Source: Mobula hypostoma (taxonomy: Eukaryota). Taken from it: a stretch of DNA of 64,000 nucleotides. Shown here piece after piece: positions 18,185 to 52,162 of this stretch. The stretch's first letter is position 1. Each line of letters begins with the position of its first letter. The notes under the pieces were generated by a model, which made no database searches, was not told the origin of the DNA, and was given only the letters and a program-made list of their open reading frames with translations. The translations under genes and the position numbers were made by a program. The stretch is taken from positions 11,780,001 through 11,844,000 of the forward strand of contig NC_086109.1 of assembly GCF_963921235.1 (NCBI RefSeq), given 5' to 3'.

Positions 18185-18376
18185 TCAAAATTTGATATCT
18201 GCATAGGTGACCTTGTCGTTGTTGTTTATGGAGTGCTCTGACATTGAGTCCTTTTGTAGCTGCACTGTTGCATACACAATTTCATTTTCACTTTTACTCT
18301 GTTGGACATCTGATCCTCTGTCTTGAAGTTGCATGACATTTGCATAAATAGTGCTCCCTTCCAGTGGTGGCACTTC
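18185..18376 (-). CDS. Terminal cytoplasmic exon with ITSM/ITIM motifs (TIYANV, IVYATV, VTYADI)
   Basis: tatatattag|GAA GTG CCA...AAA TTT TGA. 192 nt, phase 0. Three V/I/T-x-Y-x-x-V/I motifs. Confidence 0.9.
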   Translation of the reverse strand, partial: EVPPLEGSTIYANVMQLQDRGSDVQQSKSENEIVYATVQLQKDSMSEHSINNNDKVTYADIKF

Positions 18377-19639
18377 CTAATATATACAGTGTACAAAAGG
18401 TAATATTGACTTTTGATTAATGCAAATAGTAAACTCCACTGTACAAATAAGAGTCAGAATCACATTTGTTACCAACTTAAATAACATGAAGAAGTATGGT
18501 CTTATGCAGCAATATAATGCATTACTATAAAATACAAAAAAAAAGCGAAAAAAGTAATAATGAGTAGTATTCATGTGTTCAAGGACCATCCAGAAATCTG
18601 ATAGTAAAGGAGAAGTTATTTCAGAATCATTGAGTTTTGGATATTCAGCCTTCCAAATTAATCAACAAACAATTTAAAGCTCAAAAACAGCTTACTGGAC
18701 CCAACTAGCTTTGAGACCAGGATCAAGGACAGTTTCTATCACACTGTTACGAGGTACCATATTACTATCAGATGGACTCTTGCCCTCACAATCTATCTCA
18801 CTCTGGCCTTGCACCTTTTTGTCTGCCTGCTCTGTAACTAATATTTTATTTTGCATTCTATTATGTTCCTGTGTACTGCATCAATACACTGATGTGACAA
18901 AATTAACTGTGGCATGGCATGCAAAGTAGTTTTTTTAAATCTCTATTGTACCTTGGTGCATGCGACAATTGTAAACACATTTGCCAATTTATGTTGTTTA
19001 TTTGGAATGCAAATTAATCACCTACATTAATTTGTATTCTCAACTCCTCTGTGCTGATCTAGCTTTCCTTTTCAAATCTCATTGATGTTCCCTTTAACTG
19101 CTTCCTTTCATGACTAACTCCACAATATGATCACATCTGGAAATAGAAGTTAGGTATAATAGCAACTATTTTATATTTAATCTCCTGGCTTTACTCTTAC
19201 CTGTGAGTGGAAACACTACCATTCTGCTATAAAATTTCTCTGTCCACTTGATGGGACTGAGAACATATTTCATGATATTAAACCTGATTCAGATGCTGAA
19301 TCACTTTTGCAATGACTCCTGGCCCCTCAAACCTCTCTGTAAAAATCTAAAAATATCCTGAATGTTTGAAATCAATTGTGATTAAATAGTGATCTTAACT
19401 ATATATACTGGCTACACGCCATTCACGTGTGGTCATGCAACATCTTTGACTTACTCCAACTGCTTCAGATGCTTCACAAGGGAATAATGAAAGGAAAATC
19501 AAAGCAAAGACTCAGAGAGCTGAAAGGCTTTAATCTTTAGAGGCAAAATGTTTTCATTGACCACCTTAAATGGGAGAAGTGAAGGGGTCATCGAGTAAAA
19601 GCCAGAGCTTAGTGCTCGAGTAGTAGAAGCCATAACTTT

Positions 19640-20160
19640 CATGGTGCTCAGCACAAGAGAGTCTGGAGATGCTGGAAATCCAGGGCAACACACACAAAAT
19701 GCTGGAAGAACTCAGGTCAGGCAGCATCTATGGAGATGGATAAATAGTTGATGTTTCAGCTTGAGACCCTTCAGCAGGACCTGAAAGGAAGGAGGAAGAA
19801 GCCAAAACATGAAGATGTGGGGACAGGAAGCAGTACAAGCTAGAAGGTGATAGGTAAAGCCTGGTGGGTATGGGGGCAGGAGGGAGATGAAGTAAGAAGC
19901 TGAGAGGTGATAGGTGGAAAAGATAAAGGGCTGGAAAAGAAAGAATCTGATAGGAGAGGAGAGTGGACTATGGGAGAAAAGAAAGGAAGATGGGAACTGG
20001 GGAATATGCTAGGCAGACGAAGAAAAGAGAAAAGGTTGGGGTGGGGGGGGGGAGTCAGAACTGAAGAAAAGGGAAGGGAGAGAGAGAAAGGGAAAAATTA
20101 CCACAGGTTTTAGAAATTGATGTTCATGCCATCAGGTTGGAAGCTCTCCAGATGGAATGA
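19640..20160 (-). mobile_element. Penelope pLTR remnant
   Basis: ctggagatgctggaaatccagggcaacacacacaaaatgctgg terminal motif plus a purine-rich body; degenerate hammerhead. Confidence 0.75.
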
Positions 20161-20263
20161 GGTCTTATTCCAGTTCACAAGTGTAAAAGAGAACAAAATC
20201 ATTGTTACTCTGGATCAACCAACATTTTTAATTTTTTAAAATCTTATATGTGAGTACAGTTAA

Positions 20264-23200
20264 TTACAGGGAACGACTATGAACAAGAGCTAGGATAAGA
20301 GGCTCTGAGTGTCCAGTGTGTTGGTGTGGGAGAGCGTTTTCCAGCATTAAAGGTGTACAAATCCACCTAGCAAAGTTGAGGTGATATTCCATCCCAGTGG
20401 ATGAAGATGAGATTACTTCACCAAGCACAGATGATGTGGTCTTTTCAACCACTGATTCACAAGCCACAGCGATTCGCTCTGGAGAGCGTCATCATACTCC
20501 AGGTCAGACGAGAGATAACCCAGGTCAGGTTTCAGACCACAGTACCCAGGTAGATCCTTCGCATGATGGTGGAGGTGAGGAGGTAGAGAAGAAGAGGAAG
20601 GTCAAGTGGCCAGCAATGGCAGATGAGAAGGCTTGGCGTGTATTTGATGAGGATATCAGTATGATGTTGGAGAACACTCTCAGGGGAACATCAAAGAGAA
20701 AGCTGGAAGTGATGGGCGATATGATTTACGATGCTGGAAAGTACAGGTTTGGTTTGGTTGAGTTTAAGAAAGCAAAGCCTACACAGCAACCAATCAGGCG
20801 CCAGAAGGGGATTAGTAGGTTGAGGAGAGAGCTTAGATCGTTGAGACAGAGGTGGAAGGTAGCAAGTGAGGGTGACAAGCCAGGGCTTGCTGATCTCTGA
20901 GAGCATTTTCAAATAAAGTTAGCATTACTCCGTCCTGCAGAGTCAAAACGTAAAAAGACAAAGAGAGAGAAGGCAAGAAAGTCATTCTTTGAGGACCCTC
21001 ATGAGTTCACAAAGAAACTGTTGGAACAAAGTAAGAGCAGGCAGCTTAACATCCCTCATCAAGAACTTGAGGATCACCTGGCAGGCACTTACTCTAACGA
21101 ACAGCAGGAAGCTCCTTTGCTTGATATTTCAGGGCTTGTGAAGCCTACCAAGCCAGGAGTGAAGCTCGATCTGTCAGAACCCAAATTGGCAGAAGTCGAA
21201 TGGTTCATCAGAAAGGCAAGGTCAGGCTCAGTGCCAGGACCTAATGGAGTGCCATATAAGGTTTTCAAGAAGTGTGAAGAGCTGAGGAAATACTTGTGGA
21301 GATTGTTAAAGGTGGTATAGAGACAAGGTGTTGTTCCTTTGTCATGGAGTGAGGCTGAAGGAGTATACATCCCGAAGGAAGCGAATTCTTCTACATTGAA
21401 TCAGTTCTGACCAATTTCACTCCTGAATGTAGAGGGGAAGATTATGTTTGGCATTCTGGCAGAAAGCATCTCTTCATTTGTGATAGAGAATGGATTAGTA
21501 AATACATCTGTGCAGAAGGCAGGAATACTAGGCTTCTCAGGCTGCCTTGAACATTCTAGTATGATATGGCATACCATCCAGGCATCAAAAAGGTTGAGAA
21601 GAAATCTGGCTGTAGTTTGGCTTGATCTGGCAAATGCGTATGGTCTGTTCCCCATGTCTTGATTGAGTTTGCAATGGAATTCCTATGGGTTCCTGCTAAG
21701 CTGAGGAACTTCGTTATGCAGTACTACAACGATTTCCAGATGAGGTTTTCCACTCAGCAGCTTACAACTAGGTGGCAGAGCATGGATGTTGGAATCCCAA
21801 TGGGATGTGCGATTTCACCCATCCTTTTTGTATTAGCCATGGAGGTCATTGTGAGGGCTGCAGAATCAGTGGGACCAGGTGTCGCACTTGATGGCTGGGA
21901 GAAGTTACCACCAATACGAGCATTCATGGACGATCTCACCCTTTTGGGTCCCAGCACAGAGGCAGTGGAAAATGTACTATCTAGACTCGAGGAGCTAATG
22001 GATTGGGGAAGAATGAAGTTCAAGACCAAGAAGTCAAGGAGCCTTGTTCTTAGGAGAGGAAAGCTGGTTGACTTTCATTTCACCCTTTGTGGAGAGGAGA
22101 TTCCATCCATTCAGGACCAACCAGTTAAGAGCCTCGGGTGATGGTACACAGAGGAGATGAGAGACACCAAGAGGGTTCAAGAGACAGGAGAACAATTCAG
22201 CAGAGGTCTGATGTCTGTTGACAAGCGTGGCTTGCCTGGCAAGTTGAAGTTGTGGTGCTTGCAGTACAGACTGATGCCACGGATAATGTGGCCACTAACT
22301 GTCTATGAAGTGGCAATGTCCCATGTTGAGGCAATGGAACGGAAGATCAACAAGTATGTGAAGAAGTGGCTTGGAGTACCGAGCAGCCTCACCAATGTTG
22401 CAATCCACAGTAGCCAGACAAAGCTTACCATCCCAGTGCAATCCCTTGTCGAAGAGGTCAATGTTGCTACGGTAAGATCATTCTTGATACTTTGAGACTC
22501 GAAACACCCTGTCATCAAGAACACCCAGCCAGATGTGCAATCAGGCAGGAAGTGGTCAGCCCATGTAGCAGTTGATGAGGCAGAGTCTAAATTGAAGCAC
22601 AAGGAGACAGTTGGAGCTATCCAGCTAGGCCGTCAGGGACGAAGATGGACAACCCACAAGTGGTGGTCATATTCTACAGGTAAGGAGCGCTGTGAGCTTG
22701 TAACACAAGAAATACGAAAGGTAGAAGAGGAGAAGAGGTTAGCTAAAACAGCTGGTCTGGCCAAACAAGGGGCTTGGACCTGGTGGGAAAGTGTTGAACA
22801 ACGACATCTATCTTGGAATGCTCTGTGGCAGATGGAACCGCTCCGCATTTCTTTTCTATGCAGAGCAGCGTACGATCTGCTCCCAACACCTGCCAACCTC
22901 AGCACCTGGTATGAAGTTAAGACAGACAGGTGTGCTGCTTGTGGCGAGAAGAGAACACTTCAACATATTTTGAGTGCATGCAGAGTCAATCTTTCCAGCA
23001 GCATGTACACTTGGGGACATAACAACATTCTCAAAGTTGTAACAGAAGCAGTTGAGCAGAGAGTACTGCAGCACAACTTATCTCATGCCCCATGCTGCAC
23101 AGAACATCACATATCATTTGTGAAAGAAGGCTCCAAGTCAAGGGTGTACAGCGCAGGCTCACGATCAAGCATACTTCTTCAGGCAATGATTGGTGTGTCA

Positions 23201-23839
23201 AGGCCGACCTGGATGGAAAAGGCAGTTTCCCGGAGCAAATAGCTTTCACCACATTGCGTCCAGATATAATCCTATGGTCTGACACCAGTAGAGAAGTGGT
23301 TATTGGTGAACTCACAGTCCCCTGGGAAGACAACATCGATGAAGCCCATGAGCGCAAGTTAACCAAGTATGCAGAATTAAGATCAGAGTGCAGAGACAGA
23401 GGGTGGAAGGTCTCATGCTATCCATTTGAAGTAGGCTGCCGTGGGTTTATTGCGTTCACTTTCCAGAAGTGGCTGCGTGACCTTGGCTTCACTAGAAGAG
23501 AGATCAAGTCAACCAGCAGGGCTGTAGCTGAGGCAGCAGAGAAAGGATCAGCATGGGTGTGGACCAAGTATGTCCAGAGGGGCAGATAGTCAGACAGTGT
23601 ATACATATCTTGCAAACCCTTCAGTAGTTGCATAGACGCCTGAAGAGCAGACTATCTGTTGGATGGAAGTGACGGACAACTCTGATAGAGGCAGATGCCA
23701 AGTTTTTAAGCTCACCAGTGGGAGGTGGTGCTTTAGCACTGCTGGCCCACCACCTTGAGGGAGTCTTGATCATCAGCGGGCCGAAACTCCTGAAGACGGG
23801 TGGCAGATCAACTGATGATCCCACTGGTGATAGCACAGG
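20264..23839 (+). mobile_element. Near-full-length decayed HERO-type (NeSL/R2 group) non-LTR retrotransposon with RT and REL endonuclease
   Basis: N-terminal C2H2-like CWCGRAFSSIKGVQIHL; RT GIPMGCAISPILF and AFMDDL; CCHC knuckle CAACGEKRTLQHILSAC; REL RPDIILW...ELTVPWE...KLTKY...FEVGCRG. At least 7 ORF pieces. Candidate TSD ACAGTTAA (20256-20263 and 23840-23847). Confidence 0.88.
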
Positions 23840-24552
23840 ACAGTTAACATCTTAGTCCACGTGTACTTTTATTTTTAACTCTGAACATAGTTTTTGATGG
23901 TGACATCCACATCATATATTATGGCATTGTGTAGGGTGTCATTTTTACCATTAAACACCTAGATGTACTATGCCCAAAGTAATCTGGTTTTTAAATAATT
24001 TCACTTAAAGAAAACTGCTGGTGCTACGTTAGAAAATCTATGGCAGACCAGAGAATTCCAACATTTTGATAGGTGCAGTAACCCCTGAAAAAATAGAGAG
24101 GGAACAGACGAAGATTTTAATGTTAACTGACAAGACTGACCCAAATTATTCAGTGTAACAATAGATTCAATTAATTGGGACTCCAGCTGAAAATTAGTAA
24201 GGGAGTAATATGGAAAAAACCTGCTGTACATTAGGAAAATATCGCTAGAAAAGGCTACATTGATGTAAGAAATTACACATCTCTAACAGTAGAGTCAGGA
24301 CCACCATCACTTGGTACCCGTCAGTAAGGATATTAAATATTTGATTCACTCCAGAGATTATTCAAGTAAAATATCATGTTTGGATTTCAGGAAAAGTTGG
24401 ACAGGAACAAGGGGGAGAAAAAACCTAAAGGATATGCTGATAGGGTTTAACAAAGAAGAGTGGAAGACGATTTGTGTGTGGTTGTAATGTTAGAGTGGAT
24501 GATGCGTAATTCCACATAAATTCTCAAACATCCAGACAATTCACATCCTTAC

Positions 24553-24599
24553 CTGGGTTTCATTCTTGCCTTCACTGTGAAGTATGTTCCATCTGGATT
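24553..24599 (-). CDS. First cytoplasmic exon (Q)SRWNILHSEGKNETQ
   Basis: gtattttccag| ... ACCCAG|GTAAGG. 47 nt, phase 1 to 0, exactly the phase change needed between the TM and terminal exons. Confidence 0.8.
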
Positions 24600-25059
24600 C
24601 TGGAAAATACAGTGTTACTGTTGAAAGGGTCATATCAAACCCATGTTTAATCATCTGTGTGATACATGCAGAACATTATATTCATGAGAACTTCAGCAGA
24701 ATTACAGGACGATTCCATATGTAGAGCAAAAACCTGGTCTGGTTTCTGCTTAGAAACTCAGTAACCTTCACCTTCACTGTCTAATGGAGCAAATCATCAG
24801 AAAGCTGCTGCCCCATCCTCAAAGAGGAATTATTAGTTGGAATCATTACATTAGCCAATGAAATAAGACAACAGGAACACATATGACAATCAGAATGCAT
24901 TGCTACATCAAACAGTAACACCAAAACAAATTGAGAGGAAATGAAAAGAGAACAAATGGACAATAAAGATACACAAATTTGGAGAAGTAGTAACCCAACC
25001 CAAAGAGCAAGATAAGAACTACTTATCTAGAAAAACTGCAAAATAGCACGCCTCATCAT

Positions 25060-25625
25060 AAACACAAGAGATTCTGCAGATGCTGGAAACCTGCAGCAAC
25101 ACACACAAAATGCTGGAGGGACAAACAGTCAATGTTTCGGGCTGAGATCCTTCTTCGGGACTAGAAAAGAAGGGGAACAATGCCAGAATAAAATGGTGGG
25201 GGGGAGGGGAAGGAGGACTAGGTGAGCCAGGTGAGTGGGAAAGCTAAAGGGCTGGAGAAGGAATCTGATAGAGGACAGTGGACCATGGGAGAAAGGGAAG
25301 AAGGGAGGGGCACTAGGGGGATGTGATAAGCAGGTGAAGAGAAGAGACAAGAGGTCAGAGTGGGGAATAGAAGTTGGAAGGGGGAGAAAAAATACTGAAA
25401 GGAAAAAAAAATACAATGTTCATGCAATCAGGTTGTAGGCTACCAGGCTTCACCTGTCACCTTCTAGCTACCCTCCTTTCTCTCCCCCCACCCTCCAACT
25501 TTTTATTCTTTCACCTTCCCCCTTCCTTTCCTGAAGAAGGGTCTTCACTAGAAAGGTCAACTATTTATTCATTTCCCTACGTGCTGACTTATCTGCTGAG
25601 TTCCTCCAGCATTATGTGCCTGTAT
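25060..25625. mobile_element. Fold-back pair of Penelope pLTR remnants (minus 25060-25440, plus 25443-25625)
   Basis: The same terminal motif occurs in opposite orientations. Confidence 0.7.
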
Positions 25626-27189
25626 ATAAAATACCATTTATGGAACAGAGATTTTATTCAATGGCTTGGAGGATAGTTGTATAAAAGTTGTGCATAACCT
25701 ACACAGACTCAATATGTTATTGGTAGGAAAATTACCCCATGCCCTCCAGGGGCCAGAAACAGTGTTTTCTTTATTAGGCTCTGGGATTAAGTAGAAGCTG
25801 CCACTGTACAAGGGGATGCATGGTGGTGTAGTGGGTAGAACTTGTCGCTCTCACTTTCAGATGCCACCGCTGGCTAGAATTTGCAAAATGGAGATTTGCC
25901 TGTGCAAGTCTCTCCCTGCCAGTACACAGTCTCTCCAACAGCAAGACTCATGTAGTGCCTCCTCGCTGGCGACACACGGAAACTGAACTCCTCTCGGACT
26001 CGGGCTGAACTACAGAGGACAGGGAGGAGGTCTGGCCCCTGCACATGTAGCACAGAGGCCCACTAGTGTGTGGACGCGCCCTGGTGCTGGTGAACCAGAT
26101 CGCCAGCTTTGGGTAAATAGCCCCATTGCCTTGTGGGCAGCCTCAGGAGAAATGAAGGCTATGGGAGTAAACCCAGAGAGCAAATCTGGTGTCGAGCCCA
26201 TAAGGCAGCTGGACGTCATTGAATATCCTTCTGGCAGCTCCTGCACCCAAGCTGGTGCCAAACAAATTGCTTCATAAGCTTTCCTTCGGACTACACTGGT
26301 GAGGCCAAGAGGGGGATCTTGATGACTGGGCATCTCAGGATCTTCATACCTTCCACCCAGGCTTGTGATGATGATGATGATCACCCATTGTCCTTCTAGA
26401 AAGGCAAATGCCAACGACCACCACTGTTCAAGCTCACAGATTTATGGAAGGACATGTTCACTCTGTCCATACTAGCACAGCTCAAGCTTCACCAGCTCTG
26501 CAACTACAGGTGCTTTGAGGATCATGTCCAAGGTCTTTGCAATTTCAACTTCTCAGCAACCTAGGACACATACACCCGCTACTTTTTTTTTGTCAATTAC
26601 TCATTCTGTATCCACCAATCATTTTTGCCCTTTGCTAGTCTCTCTGTTCTGTATTCATTTTCTGATTTTAAGCACTGCTGTCAATCTCTTTGCAATTTTT
26701 TTCCTGTTCCAATACCTTGCAATTGAACCACTGGACTGAAGTCCTTCATCCTTAAATGTGATTCATAAATTCCTTCCATAACTCTCTCAAGCTTCCACAA
26801 TTAAGTACAATGCCCACAATATTCCAATTGCAGCCAGGCTTATATTGTATAAACAGAGACACAAGAAGCTGCAGATTCTGGAATCAGGAACAAAAAATAA
26901 TAATCCTGATCTGAAACAGTAAAAATTTTTGCACCTCCACCCCAACTCCCACAGATACGGTTTGTCCCACTGTGCTACTCATGCAGTTTGCCTTTTATTC
27001 CATGTTTTATAAAGTTTCTATCTAACTTCATTTCTGTTGAACTCTGTATCAATATACAGGTGACATCCTGTCAGGCCTTGAACCTAGGTCTCCAGCATGG
27101 TAGTCTTGAACTCTACCACTGTACACAAGGGACTGAATGAGAAATGAACCCAAGTGCAGAGATCATGCAGGAGGCCAAAGTGAATATTC

Positions 27190-28120: not shown

Positions 28121-28180
28121 CTTTGCAAAAAAACTCTCAAGCAAAATGGCATTGGATTACAAAACTAACACATTATCAAG

Positions 28181-29070
28181 TCACAAACACGAGGAAATCT
28201 GCAGATGCTGGAATTTCAAGCAACACACATAAAAGTTGCCAGTGACCACAGCAGGCCAGGCAGCATCTCTAGGAAGAGGTACAGTCGACGTTTCGGGCCG
28301 AGACCCTTCGTCAGGACTAACTGAAAGAAAAGCTAGTAAGAGATTTGAAAGTGGGAGGGGGAGGGGGAGATCCAAAATGATAGGAGAAGACAGGAGGGGA
28401 GGGATGGAGCCAAGAGCTGGACGGTTGATTGGCAAAAGGGATAATGAGAGGATCATGGGACAGGAGGCCTAGGGAGAAAGAAAAGGCCTCCTCCTCTACT
28501 GTAAAGAATCCACAGTATCCTCTACTGTAAAGACCCATTCTGATATGTCTATCCACAGCCTCCTCTACTGTAAAGATGAAGTCACACTCAGATTGGAGGA
28601 ACAACATCTTATATTCCATCTGGGTAGCCTCCAACCTAATGGCATGAACATTGACTTCTCAAACTTCCACTAATGCCCCACCTCCCTATTGTACCCCATC
28701 CGTTATCTATTTATTTATATACACACATTCTTTTTCTCTCTCTCCTTTTTCTCCCTCTGTCCCTCTCACTATACCCCTTGCCCATCCTCTGGGCTTCCCC
28801 CGTCCCCCTTTTCCTTCTCCCTAGACCTCCTGTCTCATGATCCTTTCATATCCCTTTTGCCAATCACCTGTACAGCTCTTGGCTCTATCCCTCCTCCTCC
28901 TGTCTTCTCCTATCATTTCGGATCTCCCCCTCTCCCTCCCACTTTCAAATCTCTTACTAGCTCTTCCTTCAGTTAGTCCTGACAAAGGTTCTCGGCCCAA
29001 AACATCAACTGTACCTCTTCTTAGAGATGCTGCCTGGCCTGCTGTGTTCACCAGCAACTTTTATGTGTGT
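28181..29070. mobile_element. Inverted pair of Penelope pLTRs (arms about 28218-28490 and 28805-29070) around a GIY-YIG tail
   Basis: The arms are reverse complements of each other at high identity by eye. Confidence 0.85.
28283..28318 (-). ncRNA. Minimal type-I hammerhead ribozyme motif (Penelope-associated, loopless stem III)
   Basis: AGTC-CTGACGA-A-GGGT(CTCG)GCCC-GAAA-C-GTC-GACT. Full core, stem I AGTC/GACT, stem II, palindromic ACGT stem III. Confidence 0.75.
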
Positions 29071-29790
29071 TACACTATCAAGTGTTGGCTTAAAGAGTGA
29101 GCAAAGAACAGTACAATTCACACAACTTAAATACTCAGAATAACTGAACACAGGTGTAGTGAATTACCACACAAGTAACACAAGGTGAGAACGTTTAGAA
29201 ACCAGAAGCCCACTGAGGGCTTCTAACGACCAACTGTGGGACCGACCCCAAAGTCCTGACACTTCTTCAATCAATTTCCCAATCTGGAGCAGCTTTCAAT
29301 GAACTTTGCCCTGTTTATGTGCACTTTATATTGTCTTTTAGCCTTTGTGTCATAATGTAAGACTTTATATTTTTTTTATCATTAAATTGGTCAAACAGCA
29401 AAGATATAAAGTAATGTATAAAAATAAGAGAAACATTTGTTAGTAATCTGCAGTGTGGACATGCAGAGATAACTGCAACATTTATGTGGTGACCTTGATA
29501 ACACTAAGATCAAATTTAGTTTGTGCCTTCTTTAGGCATGCCTCCTTTTTTTGCTGTCTTTTTGCACTACTCATTTAATTTCATTTTTACATTCATATTT
29601 CTTATTGTCATTTATGGTTTACTTTATAATTACTGCCTCAAAACAACAAATTTCACGACATATGCCAGTGACATTAAACCTGAGTCTGATTCTGAATCTG
29701 ATTACAATTCAGAAGTGGTTTCTGTTCTGTATGAAGCTGCGTTCTTCTTAGAAGTCAATTGTTGAGTAATGCATCAAGTAAATAATTGTA

Positions 29791-29924
29791 GCAACACACA
29801 TCAAAGTTGCTGGTGAACGCAGCAGGCCAGGCAGCATCTGTAGGAAGAGGTACAGTCGACGTTACCGCTTCCTAGAGGTGCTGCCTGGCCTGCTGCATTC
29901 ACCAGCAACTTTGATGTGTGTTGC
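29791..29924. repeat. About 57-bp-stem hairpin formed from two head-to-head Penelope pLTR termini
   Basis: 29791-29847 is the near-perfect reverse complement of 29868-29924. Confidence 0.9.
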
Positions 29925-31267: not shown

Positions 31268-31359
31268 GTCTGTATTTATTCTTTAAATAGAAAATCAGAC
31301 ATATGAAAAGCACCAGGAGGAGAACCACAGCAACAATGAGCACAATTTTGGAAAAGGGT
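31268..31359 (-). CDS. Transmembrane exon PFSKIVLIVAVVLLLVLFICLIFYLKNKYR
   Basis: ttttctcttctctgcatcatag| ... TACAGAC|GTGAGT. 92 nt, phase 2 to 1. About 21 uncharged hydrophobic residues followed by a basic stop-transfer (KNKYR). Confidence 0.92.
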
Positions 31360-32770: not shown

Positions 32771-32779
32771 CCTAATTAG

Positions 32780-33677: not shown

Positions 33678-33703
33678 TGCTCTCTCTCTCTCTCTCTCTC
33701 TCT
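33678..33703. repeat. (CT)n microsatellite; also (TA)n at about 11863-11882 and (CA)n at about 13293-13310
   Basis: Direct reading. Confidence 0.9.
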
Positions 33704-38703: not shown

Positions 38704-38867
38704 TGGAACTCTAGCTTGAAGCTTGCATAAGAACATTGGCTGTTGTCTCACCCGCCAGTTAGTTTGATTAAAGTCAACCCCTTCATATGTAGTAGGTATT
38801 AGGAAACCAAATTCAATAAACCTATCAAACATCTTTCACGTCTAAAACAGTTTTGAGAACAGTATAC

Positions 38868-38940
38868 CTTTTTGCTTGATGGTTTTCCTCATTCTTGGAC
38901 TTCTCCACTGTATTTGTGGATTGTGTAGTTGTTTGTTCAG
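38868..38940 (-). CDS. Stalk exon (A)EQTTTQSTNTVEKSKNEENHQAK(R)
   Basis: tctctgtcttttacag| ... AAAAAG|GTATAC. 73 nt, phase 1 to 2, exactly bridging Vb (exit phase 1) and the TM exon (entry phase 2). Ser/Thr-rich. Confidence 0.85.
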
Positions 38941-41558
38941 CTGTAAAAGACAGAGAAGTATATTCAACTCTTACTGAGATTTGGGAGTTAAATTCAGCTT
39001 CAATTGCATTTCAATTGAAGATAGAGCAAAATTCTTGCCCTGAGTAAAGAGCCGATTGGTTTCACGGATGTAGAGATATTTCCTCAGAGCATAATAAACA
39101 TAATAAATATAAATGAAAAAGCAATTGTATAGAATACTATGTACAAGTTTCTTAGACTTAAACAGTATCCCATAAAAGATAAATGGCAGGGCATCTTTTT
39201 TGAACTACGCTCCTAAATTGTGGAACTCAATACCTAAAGCTATAAGGGATGCAGAATCAGTTGACACTTTAAAACATCAGCTCAAAACCTATTTTATTTA
39301 AACTTGCTTTTAAGTAACATCTTTTTTTTAAATTTTATGTTTGCACTTTATCCCATTGCAAAGCACTTTGAACAATGTCGTCTATATGAAAATGATCTAT
39401 AAATAAGTTATTATTATTAATATTATTATGTAACTGTTGAGTGTGGCCATATATAAATAAGATATTACCTGTACATAAGTGATGCTAGGTGCAGGAGTAT
39501 ATGAACATAAGATGACTCATAAGGCTGAAGGGCCTGTTTGAACCTTTGACTGCAAATGATTAAGTTTACTGATAATTTCTATTTCTTTACATTTACTGAT
39601 AATTTCCATTTCCTTCCTATTTCTCAGCACTGGTGATGCTGAAATGTCATTGGAGCTGTTAAGGGGCCTGGAATATTGAGAAGACAAATTGTATTTAATT
39701 CTATGCAAACACTGGGGAATTTCCAGCTTTGCAAGGGTTTCAACCGGAAAAGTCGACACTTTCTTTCCACCGACAGATGCTGCTCGATGGGCTGAGTTCA
39801 TCTGGCAGATATTTTGTTGCTCCAGATTCCAGTATCTGCAGTCTCCAGTCTCCATCATCAGCCTCCATCATCAAAGATTCTCACCAGCCCACACCATACA
39901 GTCTTCTCACTGCTGCCATCAGGTAGAAGGGACAAGAGCCTCAGGCCTGGCACCACCATGTTGAAGAGCAGTTATTACACCTCAACCATCAGGTTCTTGA
40001 ACAAAAGGGAATAGCTACACTCGTTTAAGGACGCTTTTATCTTGTCACTTCCTGCTCGTTATTTCTTGCTATTTATTTATATCTGCGGTTGCACAGTTTG
40101 CTTACAGTATACAGTTCCTGAGGTTTACAGTTTGCGGATCCTGTTAACAGTGACTGTGTTATAGATTTGCTAATTATGCCTGCAGAAAAAGACTCTCATG
40201 ATTGTATGTGGTGACATATATGTACTCTGATAATAAATTTTACTTTGAACTTTGATAATATTGACAAAGTTTTAAGTCCATTTTCCATGAGATTCCATGC
40301 CTGCTTTCAATGCATCCTAATTGAGAGAAGTTGGGCATTGGTAGTGTCTCAGACTGAATAAAAGATCTTAAGCAGAAAGCAGCAATGTAACTTCACACAA
40401 CAAAGCAATACTGCGGTTAGAAGAGGGTGTCAGAGGCCACACGTTTCAGAGAGTGACAACTATTCTCATGTCAAATATTTACCACAGTCTGAGGCAGGGG
40501 GATATCGCTGCTGCAACACAAACAGCAACCTAAAAGAACAGCCCAATATATTATTAACCAAGCAACAGTCTCTCTCATCACCACCGGCAGAAGACTACTC
40601 CCTGGACAAGTTATGCAGAAGCCGATGACCATCAGCCCCGAGGACAAGGTTAGCAGCCACCTGGAAGCAAAACTGTTGGATGTTGACATCTGTCACATGA
40701 ATAAGATCCCTGCTCTGTTGGTGACAATCATAAGGATCATTTCACTGGAATTTGCTCCAAGATTATTTGAAGCTGTGCAAAAGCATTAATGGTGATGATG
40801 CTTGAAGGACTGATGATGTAGATTCAGATTATTTTGTGTCTGACAGCTTTGAATCAAAGGATGGGATGTTTTCATACCACGTGTACTGAATGCGAAGGGT
40901 TCCCTGGACAGACTCACAGGACACTGGCTGCTGGTGACGAGTGGTGTCGGTATTGTGACCGCTTTTTTCCACATTACATACAGATGAATTATTTGACAGA
41001 GTTGATGGCTTTGTGACCAGGTTTGCGGGTGGTACAAAGATAGGTGGAGGGACAGATAAGTGTTGTAGCAGCATGGAGCCTGTAGCAGGACTCAGTCAGA
41101 TTGGGAGAACGGAGAAGAAAGTGTCAAATGGAATATTGTGAGAGAACTGTGTGCTCATGCACTTTGGTAGGAGGAATAAACATCTCTTCTGAATGGTGAG
41201 ATAATTCAAAATCAGAGGTGCAAGGGGACTTGGTATCTTTGAGGCAAATAGACGATGAGTAACACTTGTGTCTCACTGATCTGTTATTGTTGGATTATTA
41301 GTTTATGTCCAAATGTAAACCTCTGACAGGGTGACATTTCATACAGTTCAGAGACAGGAAAATGTGCTGAGCCTCCGGTGTCCTGTCAGAGGATCAGACG
41401 CTACACTGGATGAGAACAACAGGAATGGGGTTTCTTGACCCCAGCCCACTCCCCTCAGGATTCAGCATTTCAGGGTATCCTTGCAGTCCTGAACCCTCCC
41501 AGGAAAACATGGATCATACAGTTTAATGGGAGCATAAAGCTAACAGCTGGAAACCTAC

Positions 41559-41873
41559 CATTAGATACTTGTAGATATACGTTAAAAATCAAACTGGCAC
41601 CTGGTGTTGTAATTCCACAGCCGTACCATCCTGTATCTCCAGTGTCAAGATCCTCCATAGTAACAGTAAATATTCTCTGTTCCAGGTTATCTGTGATTGA
41701 CACTCGTCCACTCCGTCCGTACTGCCCATTTGTTTGCACTAAAGCTGGACATTGGTGAATCTGTCTACGGCACCAATACTTTGTGTCTGAGCGGTACCAT
41801 GTTTCATAGTGACAATCGATTGTGATCGTTCTTCCCACAACTCCTGTTACATATTTCTCTGCCCGCAATGCAC
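41559..41873 (-). CDS. IgV exon 'Vb' (CD300/CMRF35/pIgR-like V-set domain)
   Basis: tttcag|GTGCATTGCGG...TCTAATG|GTAGGT; 315 nt, phase 1-1. Shows B-strand Cys (IDC), KYWC, a second C-C' Cys (HQC) and DTGWYGC, the Cys pattern of the CD300/pIgR/TREM-type V domains. Confidence 0.93.
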
Positions 41874-41969
41874 CTGAAATGAGGGAGGTATTTTCAGATT
41901 TGATGGAAAGGAAGAATTTAATGCAAACAAATAACTTTAAATTACAAAATCAATCACTGAGAAACTTAC

Positions 41970-42277
41970 TATCAATAGATAAACATAAAATGTTGGATCG
42001 GGAGTTTTTTCTGTTATTCCACAGCTGTACCATCCTGTATCGCGAGAGTGAAGATTAACCATAGTAACAACAAATACTCCCCATTCTGAGTTATCTGTGA
42101 TTGACATTTGTCCATTCCGTCTGTGTTGCCCATTTGTTTCCACTAAAACTGAATATTGGTGAGTGCATCTATGGCACCAATACTTTGTGTGTGAATGGTA
42201 CATTTCCTCATAGTGGCAATCGATTGTGATCGCTCTTCCCACAACTCCTCTTACTTTTTTCTCTGCCCACAATGCAC
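41970..42277 (-). CDS. IgV exon 'Va' (CD300/pIgR-like); open frame but phase-0 donor, so possibly a pseudo-exon or a soluble-isoform exon
   Basis: Acceptor tttcag|GTGCATTGTGG; GALWAEKKVRGVVGRAITIDCHY...KYWC...DTGWYSCGIT...FYVYLLI; donor ATA|GTAAGT. 308 nt, not a multiple of 3. Confidence 0.75.
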
Positions 42278-42999
42278 CTGAAACTGAGGGAGAAATCATT
42301 GAAATTGCAGAAACAAATGTGGTTTATCAGTGTGACACAACAGAAGACACTGTATGGGTCACACCTGTAATGTGAACCAGTCGTGTCTCCTCTGGTTCCT
42401 TAAGGTCGTTATAACCAGGAGTAGGGGGCTGTGGGGATCAGGTCATATTACCGATTAAATGCTCCCAATGGTGTGTGTCTCAAATAGACTCTGACAACCC
42501 AGTACAGCTCCTGGCCTTCACGTACGGCTTAGCGACTACGCCCAGCCGAACTGTTTCTACTGACAGGAGAAGTGACAAGAGACAGGTTACTGACATCCTA
42601 AGCCGGTCGCTCTGGGCAGATGGTGCTCATCAGCCATGGTTAGCAGCTCATCTAGGAGAAGGAAAAATCCGGAGCTGGAATCCCTACAGCAGTCCAAAGT
42701 TGCTTTCAAGGCTGAGTATCAAGAACTCTGCTGCCACCGGTGCCAAACTGTATCAGTTTCTGTCGTTCATCTGGATTCATTAGGAGCGTGTAGAGAAGGA
42801 GCTTATTGAATGGGCAGGAGCTGGCTCTCCTTATCGTAGTGCCTTGTCTTGCATACTAGTTTGCATATCACATAACAGAGAGAGTAGAACTATGATTCAG
42901 AGACTGATGGCTATGTTTTAGTGCCCAACTGGAACCATTTACTCCACACTATTGAAGAATGTCAGATGATCAGACTGAAATATACAAAATCCTGCTGAG

Positions 43000-43420: not shown

Positions 43421-43689
43421 GCTCTGCCATCTGATTTCCGAATGGACATTGAACCCAAGAACACTACCACACTACTTTTTGCTTCTATTTTTGCACTCCT
43501 TATTTAATTTAACTTCATATATATTTACTATAATTCACCTTTTTTTAAATCTTTTACTACGTATTGCATTGAACTGCTGCTGCAAAGACAACAAATTTCA
43601 TGACATATGTAGGCGATATTAAACTTAGAGGGATGATAGCAGGTGTATCATATTCTGTTTGAGGAGCAAGCAGTATGATCACTCTATTC

Positions 43690-44430
43690 CAGCAGGTCGT
43701 TCTCCTAATTGGTTGTCTACTGGTCCTCAGGTGGCTGCAAAGGCTGATCCGGGATCCACATATCTTAGTGCAGTGTAGACATAAGAAAGTGGTTCCTGTG
43801 GTTACTGGTTGGTTTCTCTGACTGTCCATTCTCTCCTTTTGCAGCTGCAGCTTGTTCTCTGCAGCACACTGGAGATTGCTCTCATGTAGCACATCTCCCT
43901 CTTGAACAGATTTCTTACTGGTACCTCTATTGAGTACAATGTCTTCCCAGCTTTCAGAAGTAATGTTGAATTTCTTCAGTCTGATGTTGATATTGAAAAC
44001 GTTCTTTGTCCACCAAGAGTAGCTTGTTGATCTTCCATCAACTGGAATAAAGGATTTATTTGGGGGAGTCATGATTTCGGCATTCAAATGAGATGCCAGA
44101 TCCATCAGATTTGGCGTTGCTCTATCATGGTGGGAATGTGGCTCATTTTGTCCTCCTCCATTACATTGGTGTTCGTACTTTTGTTTCTAATCCTCAAAAT
44201 CTTTTGCAAGGTTCTTTGGAGGTGTTGTACCAGGACCTTTCAGGTGATCCATAATTCACTCCATGCTGTAATCTGGTAATGATCTGAGCTGGCAATGTTT
44301 GAACCCGAGAGTGGAGAATGGACAGACTCTGATGTGGAGATGGCAACCAGAGTTTATTCATAAGAATTCCAAGAGGGCATTGGTGGCTCGTCCAAGCAAC
44401 ACCGTGAGATGTAACGTTCTCAAATCTAGG
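43690..44430 (-). mobile_element. RTE (BovB-like) LINE 3' fragment
   Basis: SESWEDIVLNR...FLCLHCTKICGSRISLCSHLR, a C-terminal C2H2-like motif. Confidence 0.7.
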
Positions 44431-45879
44431 TCCCTGTGATTACTGCTAATTGGCCGTGCACTTAAATAATCAAAGAAACATGGAATTCCTGAGCCTATCA
44501 AGATAAACTTAACAAGCTTAAAGAGGAGGCACCATGAAACTGCATTACAAAGAGCAAGTTGCTCAAGTAAAACACAAGGAACTCTAAACAAATAACAAAT
44601 TACCCAATTCAGGTCCTCTAAAACCATCAGTACCCAATGCTTTTTGGCTCCCCGAACAGGCCCGTAGAGCTCTTTACAAATGTAGGAAGGACAACTATTC
44701 TATAGAGGAAACGTTTTGTAGGTTATGGTCTTCAAGAACTCGTTTCCTTAGTTTTGCATAGGGTCCATATGCATTACTCAGGCGATATGTTATAATCCAG
44801 TTTCGGTTAACTCAAACCATTGTGTTCCTTTGTCACTCATTCGGGTCAACCCAAGTTTCTCTTCCATTCTTTATGTTTCTGCACTCGACCCTCCCTATCT
44901 GGATTCAAATTCTTCACTGAAAACATCCCTTTGCATCCTCACTTGCTCCTTCCCCCCACAGAGTTCTTCACATAGTTTGTGTTTTGCTCGGGTTCCAGCA
45001 TTCACAATTTCTTGTACCTCGAAATCAGAGGCAGGAGCAGCCACTGGGAAATCAAACAAGAAACGTGAGAAGCACATGGATGAAAGGAAAATGGAGGGCT
45101 ATGTGGGAGGGAAGTGTTAGATCGATCTCGTGGTAGGTTGAAAGCTCAGCGCAACATTGTAGGCCAAAGGGCCTGAACGGTCCGGTGCTAATCTATAATC
45201 TATATGTTCCCTCAGAGGAAAGGGGAGATTTTGGAATTGTCTAACCAATAGTACTTTCCGCATTCCTACTGACTTCCAGCCCCACCACCGGAGACTCGAT
45301 CATACACTTGTCATCCCATCATCTGTGGCCCATTAACCCCACAATCTGAATAGTTTCGGACGTGGTAGGGGTGTGAAGCACATGGAGGAAAACCAAGTTA
45401 TCACAGGGAGCCTGGAGAAACTCAAGGACCGAAATGGACGGTGTGAGCTGTGAGACAGCAGCTCAGCTGGTGGTGCCTTGCGCCTGCCTCTCATTGACTG
45501 GTGAAGAAGGCACAAGTGCTCTCTGCAGAAACAAATCCATTTTAAAATGAAATTCCTATTGCGCCTATGAGGAATATCCCCACTACAGTGAAGCAAATAA
45601 TTGTTTAGTACTTGTTCTTTAAGGAACATATGGGTCGTCACAACATCAAGAGCCGAAGGACTTGTTCTGTGCTGTAGTATTCTAGTGTCTAGTGTCTAGT
45701 ATTCCAGCAAGGGAGTTAGGAACAAAAATATTAATGCAGCTTGTTATCACATCTACAGAATATGCTCCAATACTTCATGTTTAAAGACTTGCTTGTTATT
45801 GCTATTGTGTTAGGTGTGTCTGTGTTCTATGTCCATGTACTTCTTGCGTTCACTTTCCCTCTAGATAGCTGAACAGAAA

Positions 45880-45995
45880 TTCTGGGCTGATCTTCCAGTG
45901 CAGTACTGAGGGAGTGTGGCAGTGTTGAAGGTGCTGCCCTTCATTCAACCCAGATCCTAACAGGCTGCTCAAATGCACATAAACGTCCCATGGTA
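45880..45995 (+). mobile_element. DeuSINE (SacSINE1/AmnSINE1-like) remnant; identical copy at about 50275-50390
   Basis: ccagtgcagtactgagggagtg...aggtgc matches the Deu-domain core as recalled; not searched. Confidence 0.5.
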
Positions 45996-47029
45996 CATGT
46001 TATCTTTCCATCACTGCATTAATGTTTGTTTAATCGTGCTGTGGAAATGGTGCCCTACACGTCCCCATATTGGAGCAGTAGGTGGAGCTTCAATTAATTA
46101 GTTAGCTACAAGATATCACCACATATGATGCAATTACAAATCATCCCTTCTCACCGAAAAACTTGAAGTTGACATTCTTCTCCAGTTCACCTCATCACCA
46201 TGGTAACGACCAAAGGAAATGCAGCTCGTGGGCTCTGTGGCTTGTAACCTTTCTGGCGGCAGCATTTGCGGAGGGAAGGTGAACACGGTTTATGCCGACA
46301 ATGGGCAAGGAGAGTGGGAGGAGTCAGCTGATGCGCCAAGGATTTCGAAAGTTGAGGATGGATAATTGAGTAGGACATCAAAGGAAGATACTGCCAGGGC
46401 CACATGGAGGTCTGTATTTGGATTGTGGTTTGAGTGGAGTGAGTTTGGCAGATTACTGTTCCTTGTTTCACAGCAGATACTACATTAATGGAAGAAGGAT
46501 GCAGAACCAACAGATTTCTCCATTCCTGTAAAGAATAAATAGATCCAAAATACTCCTGGGAATGAGAATGGGATTTTAGATTCAAGTAACTATATCAAGA
46601 GTCTTGGAGCACTGTGGTATCGTAGCGGTTAGTACGACTGTATTACAGTCTGGAGCGTTGGAGTTTGGAGTAGAATTCCAGTGCTGTCTGTAGGGGTCTG
46701 TATGTTTGCCCTGTGATTGTATGTGTTTTCTCCAGGTGCTCCGGTTTCCTCCCACAAGCCAAAAGAATCGACCAGTAATTAGGTTAATTCGTCATTGTAA
46801 ATTGTCCTGTACCAAGCTAGGGTTAAATTGGGGGTTGCTGGGTGGCACTATCTGTTTGATTGGAAAGGCCTGTTCTGTGGTCTACCTTGAAATAAATAAA
46901 ATAAGGAATGTACAAGTTCATATCGCAATATCTCATTAAATTCCTGAATCCAGAGTCTTTTAAATACATTAAAAGGGGAAATCTACTATTTTTGTTTGGT
47001 TTGGCCTGGTCCATATGTGACTCCAGCCC

Positions 47030-47288
47030 TGTTATGTTTTGTAACTCCAAATCATAAAATTAATTTGAAGAATAATACAAAACCCTAAGAAATGTGAGTG
47101 TTAGTTTGTTCTTTATTTTAAGTGAGAGACACACGTAACATGCGGGAACGCCATGGTGCATGTAATTCACTTATTTTTACATATAACCCCTAATAGATTA
47201 TTTAAACAAACAAGAATGCTTAATCAAAAAGTATATTTACAATATTACTACTATACTACTGTACTACTGAAATATTAAATACATAACA
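47030..47288. mobile_element. About 260-bp solo-LTR-like element with TG...CA ends and 5-bp TSD AGCCC; duplicate at 51372-51598, family members at about 36108-36356 and 61300-61545
   Basis: agccc|TGTTATG...CATAACA|agccc. Confidence 0.7.
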
Positions 47289-47958
47289 AGCCCCACCACT
47301 AAGGTTGTCTCTGAATCACCCCTCTGAAATGGCCCAGGCAGACACACATGGCAATAAATTCCACATTGACCCCTAAACCTCGCTGGTGAATGAACTGAAA
47401 ATTTCAAGGTATTTATTTTCAACGAGATGGCTGGTTTAATAAGGGTTCCGGTGAAGTAAACATATGTAGGTCAATAGAGGTAAGAATGTGAAGAAAATGT
47501 AAATAAAATGTTGGCTGTCCTCTGCCCAGGGGGGTAGTAATATCATTGACAAAGTCTCAAAAAGCATTTCATCAGTTGCACTTTAAATAAAGAGAGTTGA
47601 AATTTAGAATGTGTGAAATTGTTGTTATGATCACGTTCCAAGAATATTGGACTGTTTTAAAAATATTTTTTGTTGTACATACAGAATACTAATGTTGCAT
47701 TGTGACATTATTAAATAATGCATGATATTAAATGCCCTTCAGATTCATTCTTAGCTGAGTGCCAGATTTACTGCTGCGGCTTTGTGTGTAGAAAGAAAAG
47801 AAATCGCAAGACCATTCCCCAGCATTTATCAATGACTTCTGCTGAGTATTTTCTGCCTTTACAATTTACACATATTCACCCATCTCTGCTGTGCAAATGG
47901 TGCACGAGACAGAAGCTAATACTGATCATCAGCATGTCTAGCTCGGGTGGTCACTCAC

Positions 47959-47995
47959 CAGGCAGCGAACAGATGAGAAGAATCGGAACCCACAT
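47959..47995 (-). CDS. Leader (signal peptide) exon, proximal copy, of a CD300/CMRF35/pIgR-like receptor: MWVPILLICSLP-G
   Basis: Reverse strand ATGTGGGTTCCGATTCTTCTCATCTGTTCGCTGCCTG|GTGAGT. 37 nt with a phase-1 donor, which joins the V exon acceptor (G|GT GCA = Gly-Ala). Hydrophobic peptide resembling CD300-type leaders. Confidence 0.9.
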
Positions 47996-48345
47996 TGTGT
48001 TGTTCGCACAGATCAAACCATCAGTTTTTCTGCCACTCAACTTCTGGTCCTTAGTGTAAAATAACTTTTCAATAGAAATGTTATGGTGAAAATAAATGAG
48101 GAAGAAGGCAGTCGGAAGCCCAATTGTGAAAGCACAGTGAAGCAACTGAGGAAATATGTTTACTAAGAAATTGATATTTTCTCTGTAGAATTATGGTATA
48201 AATTTATTTTCAATGAATGGTGAGCATGATGGAGAGATTTAAAAAATTGTATAGCAACTGAACTGAGAGGAATAAAATAAATTGTGAGGTGATGATAAAA
48301 AAATATACAGTTTACAGATTGAGGGGAATTTCCCCTCTCTATGCA
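47996..48345 (-). promoter_or_regulatory. Proximal promoter of leader copy A (Ets/PU.1-like GAGGAAG and CGGAAG; GATA-containing 26-mer)
   Basis: aaatgaggaagaaggcagtcggaagcc is conserved in both duplicate copies; TGATAA lies in the invariant block 48275-48300. Function is inferred. Confidence 0.45.
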
Positions 48346-48530
48346 ATCACTCCTCCAAGAGGACACAACTTTGCCGCAGGGTTTGGAGGCTGGCAAACCT
48401 CAATGACCCGGAGAGCTATGATAGCTGAAGTCAGTGAGTTATGCTTTGGCTCTTGGTAGGGTCACACACGACAAATAGGTCAAAGGTTCGAGGCCAGACT
48501 AAGTGTGGTCCACAGGTCCTTCATGTTCAA

Positions 48531-49210
48531 TAGACAATAGACAATAGGTGCAGAAGTAGACCATTCAGCCCTTTGAGCCTGCACCACCATTCTGAGATCA
48601 TGGCTGATCATCTACTATCAATACCCGGTTCCTGCCTTGTCCCCATAACCCTTGATTCCCCTATCCATAAGATACCTATCTAGCTCCTTCTTGAAAGCAT
48701 CCAGAGAATTGGCCTCCACTGCCTTCTGAGGCAGCGTGTTCCACACCTCCTCAACTCTCTGGGAGAAGAAGTTCCTCCTCAACTCTGTCCTAAATGACCT
48801 ACCCCTTATTCTTAATCCATGCCCTCTGGTACTGGACTCTCCCAGCATCTGGAACATACTTCCTGCCTCTATCTTGTCCAATCCCTTAATAATCTTATAT
48901 GTCTCAATCAGATCCCCCTTCAATCTCCTTAATTCCAGCGTGTACAAGCCCAGTCTCTCTAACCTCTCTGCGTAAGACAGTCCGGACATCCCAGGAATTA
49001 ACCTAGTGAACCTACGCTGCACCTCCTCCACAGCCAGGATGTCCTTCCTTAACCCTGGAGACCAAAATTGCACACAATACTCCAGGTGTGGTCTCACCAG
49101 GGCCCTATACAAATGCAAAAGGATTTCCTTGCTCTTGTATTCAATTCCCTTTGTAATAAAGGCCAACATTCCATTAGCCTTCTTCACTGCCTGCTGCACT
49201 TTCTCATTCA
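48531..49210 (-). mobile_element. Young 5'-truncated CR1 with 13-bp TSD and (CTATTGT)n tail
   Basis: About 200 uninterrupted RT C-terminal codons; TSD CCTTCA(T/C)GTTCAA at 48518-48530 and 49211-49223. Confidence 0.92.
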
Positions 49211-52125
49211 CCTTCACGTTCAAGGGTACACCTCAGGGCTAACATTCCTGAATGGTAAATCGAAACTGTTACAGAAACAGCAATAAAGAAGCCTTCTATA
49301 TCCATGTGTGACAGTATTCCTGAATCTGCACCTGGGACTTGCACAACTGACAGCAGTGAAAACCAAGTTACTGAACTGATGAAGACACTGCCAGATGGAA
49401 GACCTTCATTGCCGCCCTAAACGCCAGTGGCATAATGGGCAGTAACACAGAGATGATCTTGGCTCAGACCCTCATTGAATGGTGAGAGTGGTGAAAAGAA
49501 TAAAAAAAAACTTTGTATAGCAACAAGTGAGAAGGTTAAAATAAATTGTGAGGTGATGATAAAAAAAACTGTGTTAAGATTGAGAGGGGATGATGAAGTT
49601 TCATCTGTATTTTTCTGATGGAAGCTGAAAATTAATACGTTAGTAGAATAGTACTTTCCACATACCTACCTACTCCCGGCCCCACCACCAGAGACTCGAT
49701 CATACACTTGTCATTCCATCATCTGTGGCCCATTAACCCACCAATCTGAATAGTTTCGGTCGTGGTGGTGTGAAGCAGATGGAGGAAAACCAAGCTGTCA
49801 CAGGGAGCCTGGAGAAACTCAAGGATTGAAATGGTCCGTGTGAGCTGTGAGACAGCAGCTCAGCTGGTGGTGCCTTGTGCCTGCCTCTCATTGACTGGTG
49901 AAGAAGGCACAAGTGCTCTCTGCAGAAACAAATCCACTTTGTAATGAAATTCCTATTGCGCCTATGAGAAATATCCCCACTACAGTGAAGCAAACAATTG
50001 TTTAGTACTTTTTTAAAGGAATATATGGGTTGGCACAACATCGAGGGCCGAAGGGCTTGTACTGTGCTGTAGTATTCTAGTGTCTAGTGTCTAGTATTCC
50101 AGCAAGGGAGTTAGGAACAAAAATATTAATGCAGCTTGTTATCATGTCCACAGAATATGCTCCAATACTTCATGTTTAAAGACTTGCTTGTTATTGCTAT
50201 TGTGTTAGGTGTGTCTGTGTTCTATGTCCATGTACTTCTTGCGTTCACTTTCCCTCTAGATAGCTGAACAGAAATTCTGGGCTGATCTTCCAGTGCAGTA
50301 CTGAGGGAGTGTGGCAGTGTTGAAGGTGCTGCCCTTCATTCAACCCAGATCCTAACAGGCTGCTCAAATGCACATAAACGTCCCATGGTACATGTTATCT
50401 TTCCATCACTGCATTAATGTTTGTTTAATCGTGCTGTGGAAATGGTGCCCTACACGTCCCCATATTGGAGCAGTAGGTGGAGCTTCAATTAATTAGTTAG
50501 CTACAAGATATCACCACATATGATGCAATTACAAATCATCCCTTCTCACCGAAAAACTTGAAGTTGACATTCTTCTCCAGTTCACCTCATCACCATGGTA
50601 ACGACCAAAGGAAATGCAGCTCATGGGCTCTGTGGCTTGTAACCTTTCCGGCAGCAGTATTTGCGGAGGGAAGATGAACACGGTTTATGCAGCCACGGGC
50701 AAGGAGAGTGGGAGGAGTCAGCTGATGCACGGAGGACTTTGGAAGTTGAGGATGGATAACTGAAAAGGATATCAAAGTACGATACTGCCAGGGCCACATG
50801 GAGGTCTGTATTAGGATTATAGTTTGAGTGGAGTGAGTTTGGCAGATGACTGTTCCTTGTTTCACAGCAGACACTATATTAATGGAAGAAGGATGCAGAA
50901 CCAACAGATTTCCCATTCCTGTAAAGAATAAATCCATCCGAAATACTCCTGGGAATGAGAATGGGATTTTAGATTCAAGTAATTATATCAAGAGTCTTGG
51001 AGCACTGCAGTATTGTAGCGATTAGTACGACTGTAATACAGACTGGGGTGTTGGAGTTTGGAGTACAATTCCAGTGCTGTCTGTAGGGGTCTGTATGTAT
51101 GCCCTGTGATTGTATGTGTTTTCTCCAGGTGCACCAGTTTCCTCCCACAGGCCAAAAGAATCGACAAATAATTAGGTTAATTAGTCATTGTAAATTGTCC
51201 TGTATCAGGCTAGGGTTAAATTAGGGGTTGCTGGGCAGCACGGTTTGTTTGATTGGAAAGGCCTGTTCTGTGCTCTACCTCTAAATAAATTAATAAATAA
51301 ATACAAGGAATATAAAATAGTCGTATTTCATTAAATTACTCAATGCCAGAGCCTTTTGAATACTCCAGCCCTGTTATGCTTTGTAACTCCAAATCATAAA
51401 TTTAATTTGAGGAAAAAGACAGAAGTTCAAGAGGTGCTAGTTTGTTTTTTACTTTAAGCGAGGTGTGCACATATCACGTGATAGCGTCATGATATCTGAA
51501 ATTCACTTATTTTTACATGTAATACGTATTAGATTATTTAAACAAACAAGAATTCTTAATCAAATTATATATTTAAAATATTACTCGAATACACAACAAG
51601 CCCCGCCGCTAAGTTTGTTTCTGAACCGCCCTCTGATATAGCCCAGGCAGACACACACGGCTCAGAGCGATAAATTCCACCCTGGCCCCTGAATCTCACC
51701 AGAGAATGAATTTAAAAATTCAAAGGATTTTTGGCAGGTTTAATATGGGTGTGGGTAAAATATGCCTATGTGACTGGCAAGAGGCAAGAATGAGAAGCAA
51801 ATGCAAATATTTTTCTTTTACACACAGAACACGTACATTGCATTGTGATGTTATTAAGATATTGCATGGCATTAAGTATCCCTTCAGTTTCATTCATAAT
51901 TGAGTGCCTTTGTACTGGTGTGGATTTGTGTGCTACGCTCCCATGGAAAGAAGGAAATTGCAAGTCCATTCCCCAGCACTTATCAATAATTTTTGCTGAG
52001 TATTTTCTACCTTTACAATTTACACATTTTCCACCTTTACAATTTACACATTTTGCTGTGGAAATAGAGCATGAGATCTAAACTAACACTCTTTATCAGC
52101 ACGTCTATCTCTGGTGGTCACTCAC

Positions 52126-52162
52126 CAGGCAAGGAACAGATGAGAAGAATCGGAACCCACAT
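52126..52162 (-). CDS. Leader exon, distal duplicate, encoding the same peptide MWVPILLICSLP-G
   Basis: ATGTGGGTTCCGATTCTTCTCATCTGTTCCTTGCCTG|GTGAGT. Intact ATG and donor; differs from the proximal copy only by synonymous changes. Confidence 0.8.

Follow-up and report, generated by a model that had tools for sequence, protein, structure and literature searches.

A probable MDIR/CD300-like inhibitory receptor gene in Mobula hypostoma with one in-phase V exon, decayed Ig exons and a duplicated leader

The MDIR family was described in the clearnose skate (Cannon et al. 2006, as cited in PMC3031540). The family comprises inhibitory forms and forms with a charged transmembrane segment, and its ectodomains are built from repeated exon modules. 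Here we analyzed a window of 64,000 nucleotides of Mobula hypostoma (contig NC_086109.1, positions 11,780,001 to 11,844,000), in which an initial annotation made from the DNA letters had placed a complete receptor gene at window positions 18185-52162. Our results indicate that the locus is probably a single-V receptor gene of MDIR/CD300-like type with an immunoreceptor tyrosine-based inhibitory motif (ITIM) tail, in which the first V exon and a C2 exon are dead and the leader is duplicated. Since it is colinear with clearnose-skate MDIR2, it appears to be a new member of the known ray/skate MDIR/CD300-like family.

The leader together with the in-phase V exon, hereafter Va, shares 64.7% identity with MDIR2 (P0173) across 119 residues (E = 2.5e-51), and residues 121-251 of the product align with MDIR2 residues 230-384 (E = 2e-20). 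The two genes share the leader type, the order of V, C2, stalk, uncharged transmembrane segment, short cytoplasmic exon and multi-tyrosine tail, and a tail ending in a ...TYA..KF-type motif. In contrast to MDIR2, the C2 exon here is dead, leaving a single Ig domain, one V exon is disabled, the last TIYASV-type motif is gone and the leader is duplicated. CD300a (IRp60) and CD300f (CLM-1/IREM-1) resemble the predicted product in their single V domain with two disulfides, their uncharged transmembrane segment and their ITIM tail; they also provide the best solved structures (template modelling (TM) scores 0.86-0.92, 37-40% identity), and both reside in clusters of paired inhibitory and activating genes. 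Yet no WLRD-type F-G stretch is present here, and in exon layout and tail motifs the gene follows the ray/skate family. pIgR and the teleost pIgR-like proteins have the same V subtype, and pIgR attains the top summed score owing to matches in all its domains; unlike pIgR, however, the present gene has one in-frame V, another D1 stretch in the first complementarity-determining region (CDR1), and an ITIM tail instead of a transcytosis tail. The initial description of an inhibitory CD300/pIgR-like receptor is thus sustained by a complete-looking open reading frame (ORF), a V domain matching CD300a, CD300f and pIgR, and the ITIM tail, whereas the accompanying claim of a lineage-specific receptor falls, the family being MDIR, already described in skate.

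Gene model and predicted product

Exons were found with the proteins of relatives as guides, and their splice borders were then read directly in the DNA; unless stated otherwise, all features lie on the minus strand. Six exons, all bordered by AG and GT, join to 756 nt, or 251 residues plus the stop codon, exactly as the initial annotation had it, with phases from leader to tail of 1, 1-1, 1-2, 2-1, 1-0 and 0. The proximal leader exon L1 (47959..47995) is followed by Va (41559..41873), a CD300-type V-set exon of 315 nt with both disulfides, by a Thr/Ser-rich stalk exon (38868..38940; phase 1 to 2), and by a transmembrane exon (31268..31359; phase 2 to 1) that is uncharged and has KNKYR after it. 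A short cytoplasmic exon, cyt1 (24553..24599; phase 1 to 0), reads QSRWNILHSEGKNETQ, and the tail exon (18185..18376) contributes TIYANV, similar to an immunoreceptor tyrosine-based switch motif (ITSM), and the ITIMs IVYATV and VTYADI, and ends with TGA. The product would accordingly be laid out as leader, CD300-type V domain, stalk, uncharged transmembrane segment and a tail bearing the three tyrosine motifs. Its last 134 residues, beginning with the stalk, are colinear with the C-terminal parts of five other relatives of inhibitory type (30-42% identity, E = 2e-29 to 6e-19), and at the sequence level this colinearity of the 3' exons is far beyond chance.

The sole in-frame product would be a type I membrane protein of 251 residues with a short signal peptide, one V domain, and an ITSM-like motif beside two ITIMs. 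If it acts like its homologues CD300a, CD300f and skate MDIR2, Va would bind ligand; phosphorylation of the tail tyrosines would recruit SH2 phosphatases, and the presumed outcome would be that the signals of activating family members of the same cluster are damped.

The stretch from Va to the stalk also holds the relic of a C2-type Ig exon (40700..41059), which matches the second Ig domain in many relatives; in MDIR2 the homologous residues are 144-210. The relic is damaged by a 1-nt frameshift, an insertion, the loss of a Cys and two in-frame stops. The predicted product thus has the V domain as its only Ig domain, and judged from its lesions and homology the relic is a sign of ancestry, not of present use. 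The tail is shortened as well: its TGA stands where relatives carry on to a fourth tyrosine motif of TIYASV type, a degenerate trace of which is found past the stop in a different frame. In its structural account the initial annotation listed items that are all present, but it overlooked the C2 relic, the shortened tail, and the 314-nt length and phase of the upstream V exon, to which we now turn.

The in-phase and out-of-phase V exons

Both V exons are called V-set by Pfam (1e-13 for Va and 7.5e-10 for the upstream exon, Vb), and tblastn of the 64-kb window found no V exon besides these two. Compared with PDB sequences, Va matches pIgR at 3.5e-46 with all domains summed, CD300a at 5e-19 and CD300f at 4e-17. 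An AlphaFold model of Va, built with an input alignment of 42 family domains, has a predicted local distance difference test score (pLDDT) of 92. Its top solved folds are CD300lf/CLM-1 (TM-score 0.90-0.92, 37-38% identity) and CD300a (40% identity), followed by pIgR D1, TREM2 and NKp44. All four Cys columns, for the canonical and the extra C-C' disulfide, are present in Va, which keeps 40 of 41 conserved columns; Vb has lost four. Two motif absences noted at the outset were confirmed. The pIgR D1 motif RH.RKYWC is missing, the pIgR stretch NRHTRKYWC being aligned opposite YRSDTKYWC in Va. The WLRD-type stretch is a feature of the F-G loop of lipid-binding CD300 members, and WLRD occurs in neither V exon, Va reading GITTPGASLIFNV and Vb GITEKTPDPTFYV.

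Vb (41970..42283) and Va are identical at 61 of 102 residues (59.8%; ~62/103 by the earlier hand count) and at 78% of nucleotides. Their alignment is ungapped over 102 codons, after which the conserved donor of Vb comes 7 nt earlier. Counted from its upstream acceptor Vb is 314 nt long, and counted from the acceptor that corresponds to that of Va it is 308 nt, whereas Va itself measures 315 nt; the Vb donor, ATA/gtaagt, is in phase 0. Vb shifts the frame in every splice combination and has no in-frame join to Va or to the stalk: splicing leader-Vb-Va meets a stop nine codons into the Va exon, and leader-Vb-stalk meets one within the transmembrane exon. When an in-phase alternative donor was sought for Vb, the only candidate was A/gtttct, a poor site 4 nt beyond the strong donor. 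In addition, Vb departs from two columns invariant in the V domains of 53 relatives, namely C43Y, which removes a Cys of the CD300-type second disulfide, and R58Q, which replaces the Arg of the G-R-x-S-I-T-D stretch. From the 7-nt loss and the lost invariant residues, Vb is read as the disabled former first domain of a two-V ectodomain. The proposal that alternative V use diversifies the receptor is not upheld, as Vb is out of phase and has lost the invariant Cys and Arg. Read from its acceptor, the Vb frame stays open until 10 codons past the donor, where a TAA (41937) ends it within the 96-nt Vb-Va intron (41874..41969), which also contains ATTAAA.

We also examined how the two exons have diverged. 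Their pairwise ratio of nonsynonymous to synonymous substitution rates (dN/dS), a comparison the initial annotation had proposed, came to 1.07-1.28 with dS ~0.25. With strands and loops assigned from the Va model, mismatches fall at 23 of 45 loop and 18 of 57 strand positions (Fisher p = 0.067; CDR-like loops, p = 0.04), and the three segments highlighted earlier hold 16 of the 41 mismatches. The claim that V differences concentrate in loops thus survives as a weak lean, without strong enrichment.

At least six relatives carry two V domains directly in series within one protein. In a maximum-likelihood (ML) tree of 82 domains, Vb joins the V domains that come first in P0159 (Mobula birostris, 'pIgR-like') and P0008 (Hypanus sabinus, GCA_030144855.1, 'CMRF35-like molecule 5') in a clade supported at 98/95. 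For Va, the highest similarity (74%) is with the second V domain of P0008, whose stalk shares 77% identity with the stalk here. Va and Vb are sisters in neither ML tree. P0159 and P0008 use both V exons in series, whereas in the present gene the first is out of phase and the gene runs on into a transmembrane segment and an ITIM tail. Together these comparisons point to an ancestor with two V domains in series, the first of which would have been disabled in the present gene. Duplicated V exons in this family are read in series as extra domains and not chosen among. As for the view that the family diversifies through exon-level rather than whole-gene duplication, the V exon duplication is real, but the family also expands by whole-gene duplication. 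Furthermore, read-through of the stalk donor (38825..38867) gives RYTVLKTVLDVKDV followed by a stop, matching the P0008 C-terminus RYTVPKTVLHVRDI with the same stop position, and may encode a conserved soluble isoform.

Duplicated leader exons

The distal leader exon L2 (52126..52162) runs from ATG to the phase-1 donor G/gtgagt and encodes the same 12-residue peptide as L1, MWVPILLICSLP, with two synonymous base differences. Both leaders belong to a tandem duplication of ~3 kb, each copy of which takes in the leader with ~230-270 bp ahead of it and 2.7 kb of intron 1 behind it. The distal copy (49647..52388) holds the putative promoter, leader and the first part of intron 1; the proximal copy (45247..48228) is 75-85% identical to it near the leader and 100% identical over 45836-46135. 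The shared sequence upstream of L2 (52163..52388) is a putative core promoter and 5' untranslated region (UTR), and the two copies have both retained a block ~100 bp upstream of the leaders that includes a TTCCTC box at -108. Over the last 50 nt ahead of the ATG, L1 and L2 are ~60% identical. The initial annotation was thus right about two intact leader exons, which have canonical phase-1 donors and stand in a tandem duplication, and both may be usable first exons. The same leader peptide, however, means no added protein diversity, so the idea that alternative promoters diversify the receptor does not hold; the local duplication would provide at most two start sites for one protein.

Identity within the duplication is uneven: a stretch of 300-400 bp (45836-46135 and its copy ~4.4 kb upstream) is 100% identical, while the rest is 75-97% identical. 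This unevenness suggests later gene conversion, and the identical stretch could reflect recent conversion or an assembly effect. The L1 frame is open for ~59 codons upstream of its ATG (47996-48172), and it looks like sequence from the extended N-termini or the interior of several predicted relatives (P0004, P0010, P0061 and P0094). The resemblance suggests a conserved 5' UTR that gene predictors at times render as protein or use to fuse neighbouring genes.

Alternative readings and wider context

A number of observations weigh against a working single-V receptor gene. Vb, with its strong splice signals, lies just upstream of Va, and its default inclusion may make the mRNA unproductive. The stalk-to-transmembrane join over 7.5 kb is putative, drawn from order, strand, phase and colinearity only, and the presumed joins across the 6.7-kb intron to cyt1 and the 6.2-kb intron to the tail are likewise drawn from order, strand and phase. 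Va sits on a long terminal branch in the V-domain tree. The phylogeny of Vb, which the initial annotation had suggested, groups it with the first domains of two-V ray proteins as described above, but approximately unbiased (AU) tests do not reject sisterhood of Va and Vb (p = 0.355 and 0.428). Three small RNA runs contained a share of 0.00-0.01 of the sampled V-region words. No protein more than 74% identical over the full V domain was found in a database of 5.8 billion sequences, and no public coding annotation of the gene was found among proteins of 87-460 residues. Protein searches and tblastn of 180 retrieved proteins found no protein encoded by the window.

The locus as a whole could instead be a decaying pseudogene or mainly unproductive, default inclusion of Vb leading to the premature stop in Va and to nonsense-mediated decay, and the open 251-residue path being a survivor of recent decay and not a selected product. 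Such decay sits uneasily with six exons across 30 kb that are all open, in phase and flanked by canonical splice sites, with three tyrosine motifs that are all intact, and with leaders that differ only synonymously inside a region 75-85% identical; Va, moreover, retains its conserved columns and both disulfides while Vb lost four. We consider wholesale decay less likely, but it is the main and a serious rival, with the consensus donor gtaagt and good acceptor of Vb, the three separate lesions (Vb, the C2 relic and the shortened tail), the lack of a matching annotated protein, a Va/Vb dN/dS of ~1.1-1.3, and the large, transposon-rich introns all in its favor. Phase already largely refutes the model of the initial annotation, in which either of two promoters and either of two V exons would be combined with a constant stalk, transmembrane segment and tail. 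Leaders and V exons do occur in pairs, and V differences lean slightly toward CDR-like loops, but Vb is out of frame with stalk and transmembrane exon alike and meets stops in every splice combination. Together with identical leader peptides, invariant structural residues missing from Vb, and relatives that read tandem V exons in series and whose first domains group with Vb, this makes combinatorial use highly improbable.

Alternatively, Vb might be kept for a short secreted single-V decoy or regulator, made either through frameshifted splicing or by reading on as far as the TAA (41937), and a second soluble form could arise from read-through of the stalk donor. While the open Vb frame with its intronic ATTAAA, and the agreement of the stalk read-through peptide and stop position with the annotated Hypanus P0008 C-terminus, speak for soluble forms, Vb is without the second-disulfide Cys and the invariant Arg, so it possibly folds poorly, and polyadenylation in a 96-nt intron between strong splice sites is unlikely; we judge this explanation improbable. 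Equally improbable is a role for Vb as a regulated 'poison' or decoy exon: inclusion would give a frameshift or, by read-through, a short secreted V, skipping would give the membrane ITIM receptor, and the balance would determine how much inhibitory receptor is made, while the two diverged leader/promoter modules would make the switch specific to tissue or stimulus. If the locus is a single-V ITIM receptor gene, as we find probable, its front end of two leaders and two V exons would be a by-product of birth-and-death evolution of the family.

The locus adds one more annotated example to the ray MDIR/CD300-like receptor clusters and opens no new mechanism. In a single place it illustrates how the family changes, with a tandem V duplication of the kind normally read as extra domains, and it suggests that single exons (V, C2 and the tail end) can die while the rest form an open inhibitory receptor. 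It is also of value for annotation, since gene prediction will probably take in the broken V exon and call a pseudogene, or fuse the gene with its neighbours.

Within the 64-kb window no conserved flanking genes were found. An isolated transmembrane exon of activating type (54039-54128) lies 1.9 kb upstream of L2; it is splice-flanked, reads SYLIWSVGHWLLFALLEYSISIKWF, has His for the transmembrane Arg of relatives and Glu for Gly, and is one residue shorter. No V or stalk exon matching it was found in 54-64 kb. Rfam gave no match anywhere in the window at gathering threshold, and a tandem repeat search of the window returned nothing relevant. The cyt1-tail intron contains a remnant of a retrotransposon of long interspersed nuclear element (LINE) type with RVT_1 and zf-RVT ORFs (20397-23589, plus strand, antisense to the gene), and the transmembrane-cyt1 intron an inverted repeat (28222-28486 and 28807-29071) whose arms are 91% identical. 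A direct repeat (10852-11160 and 54878-55184; 93% identical) presumably represents copies of a dispersed element.

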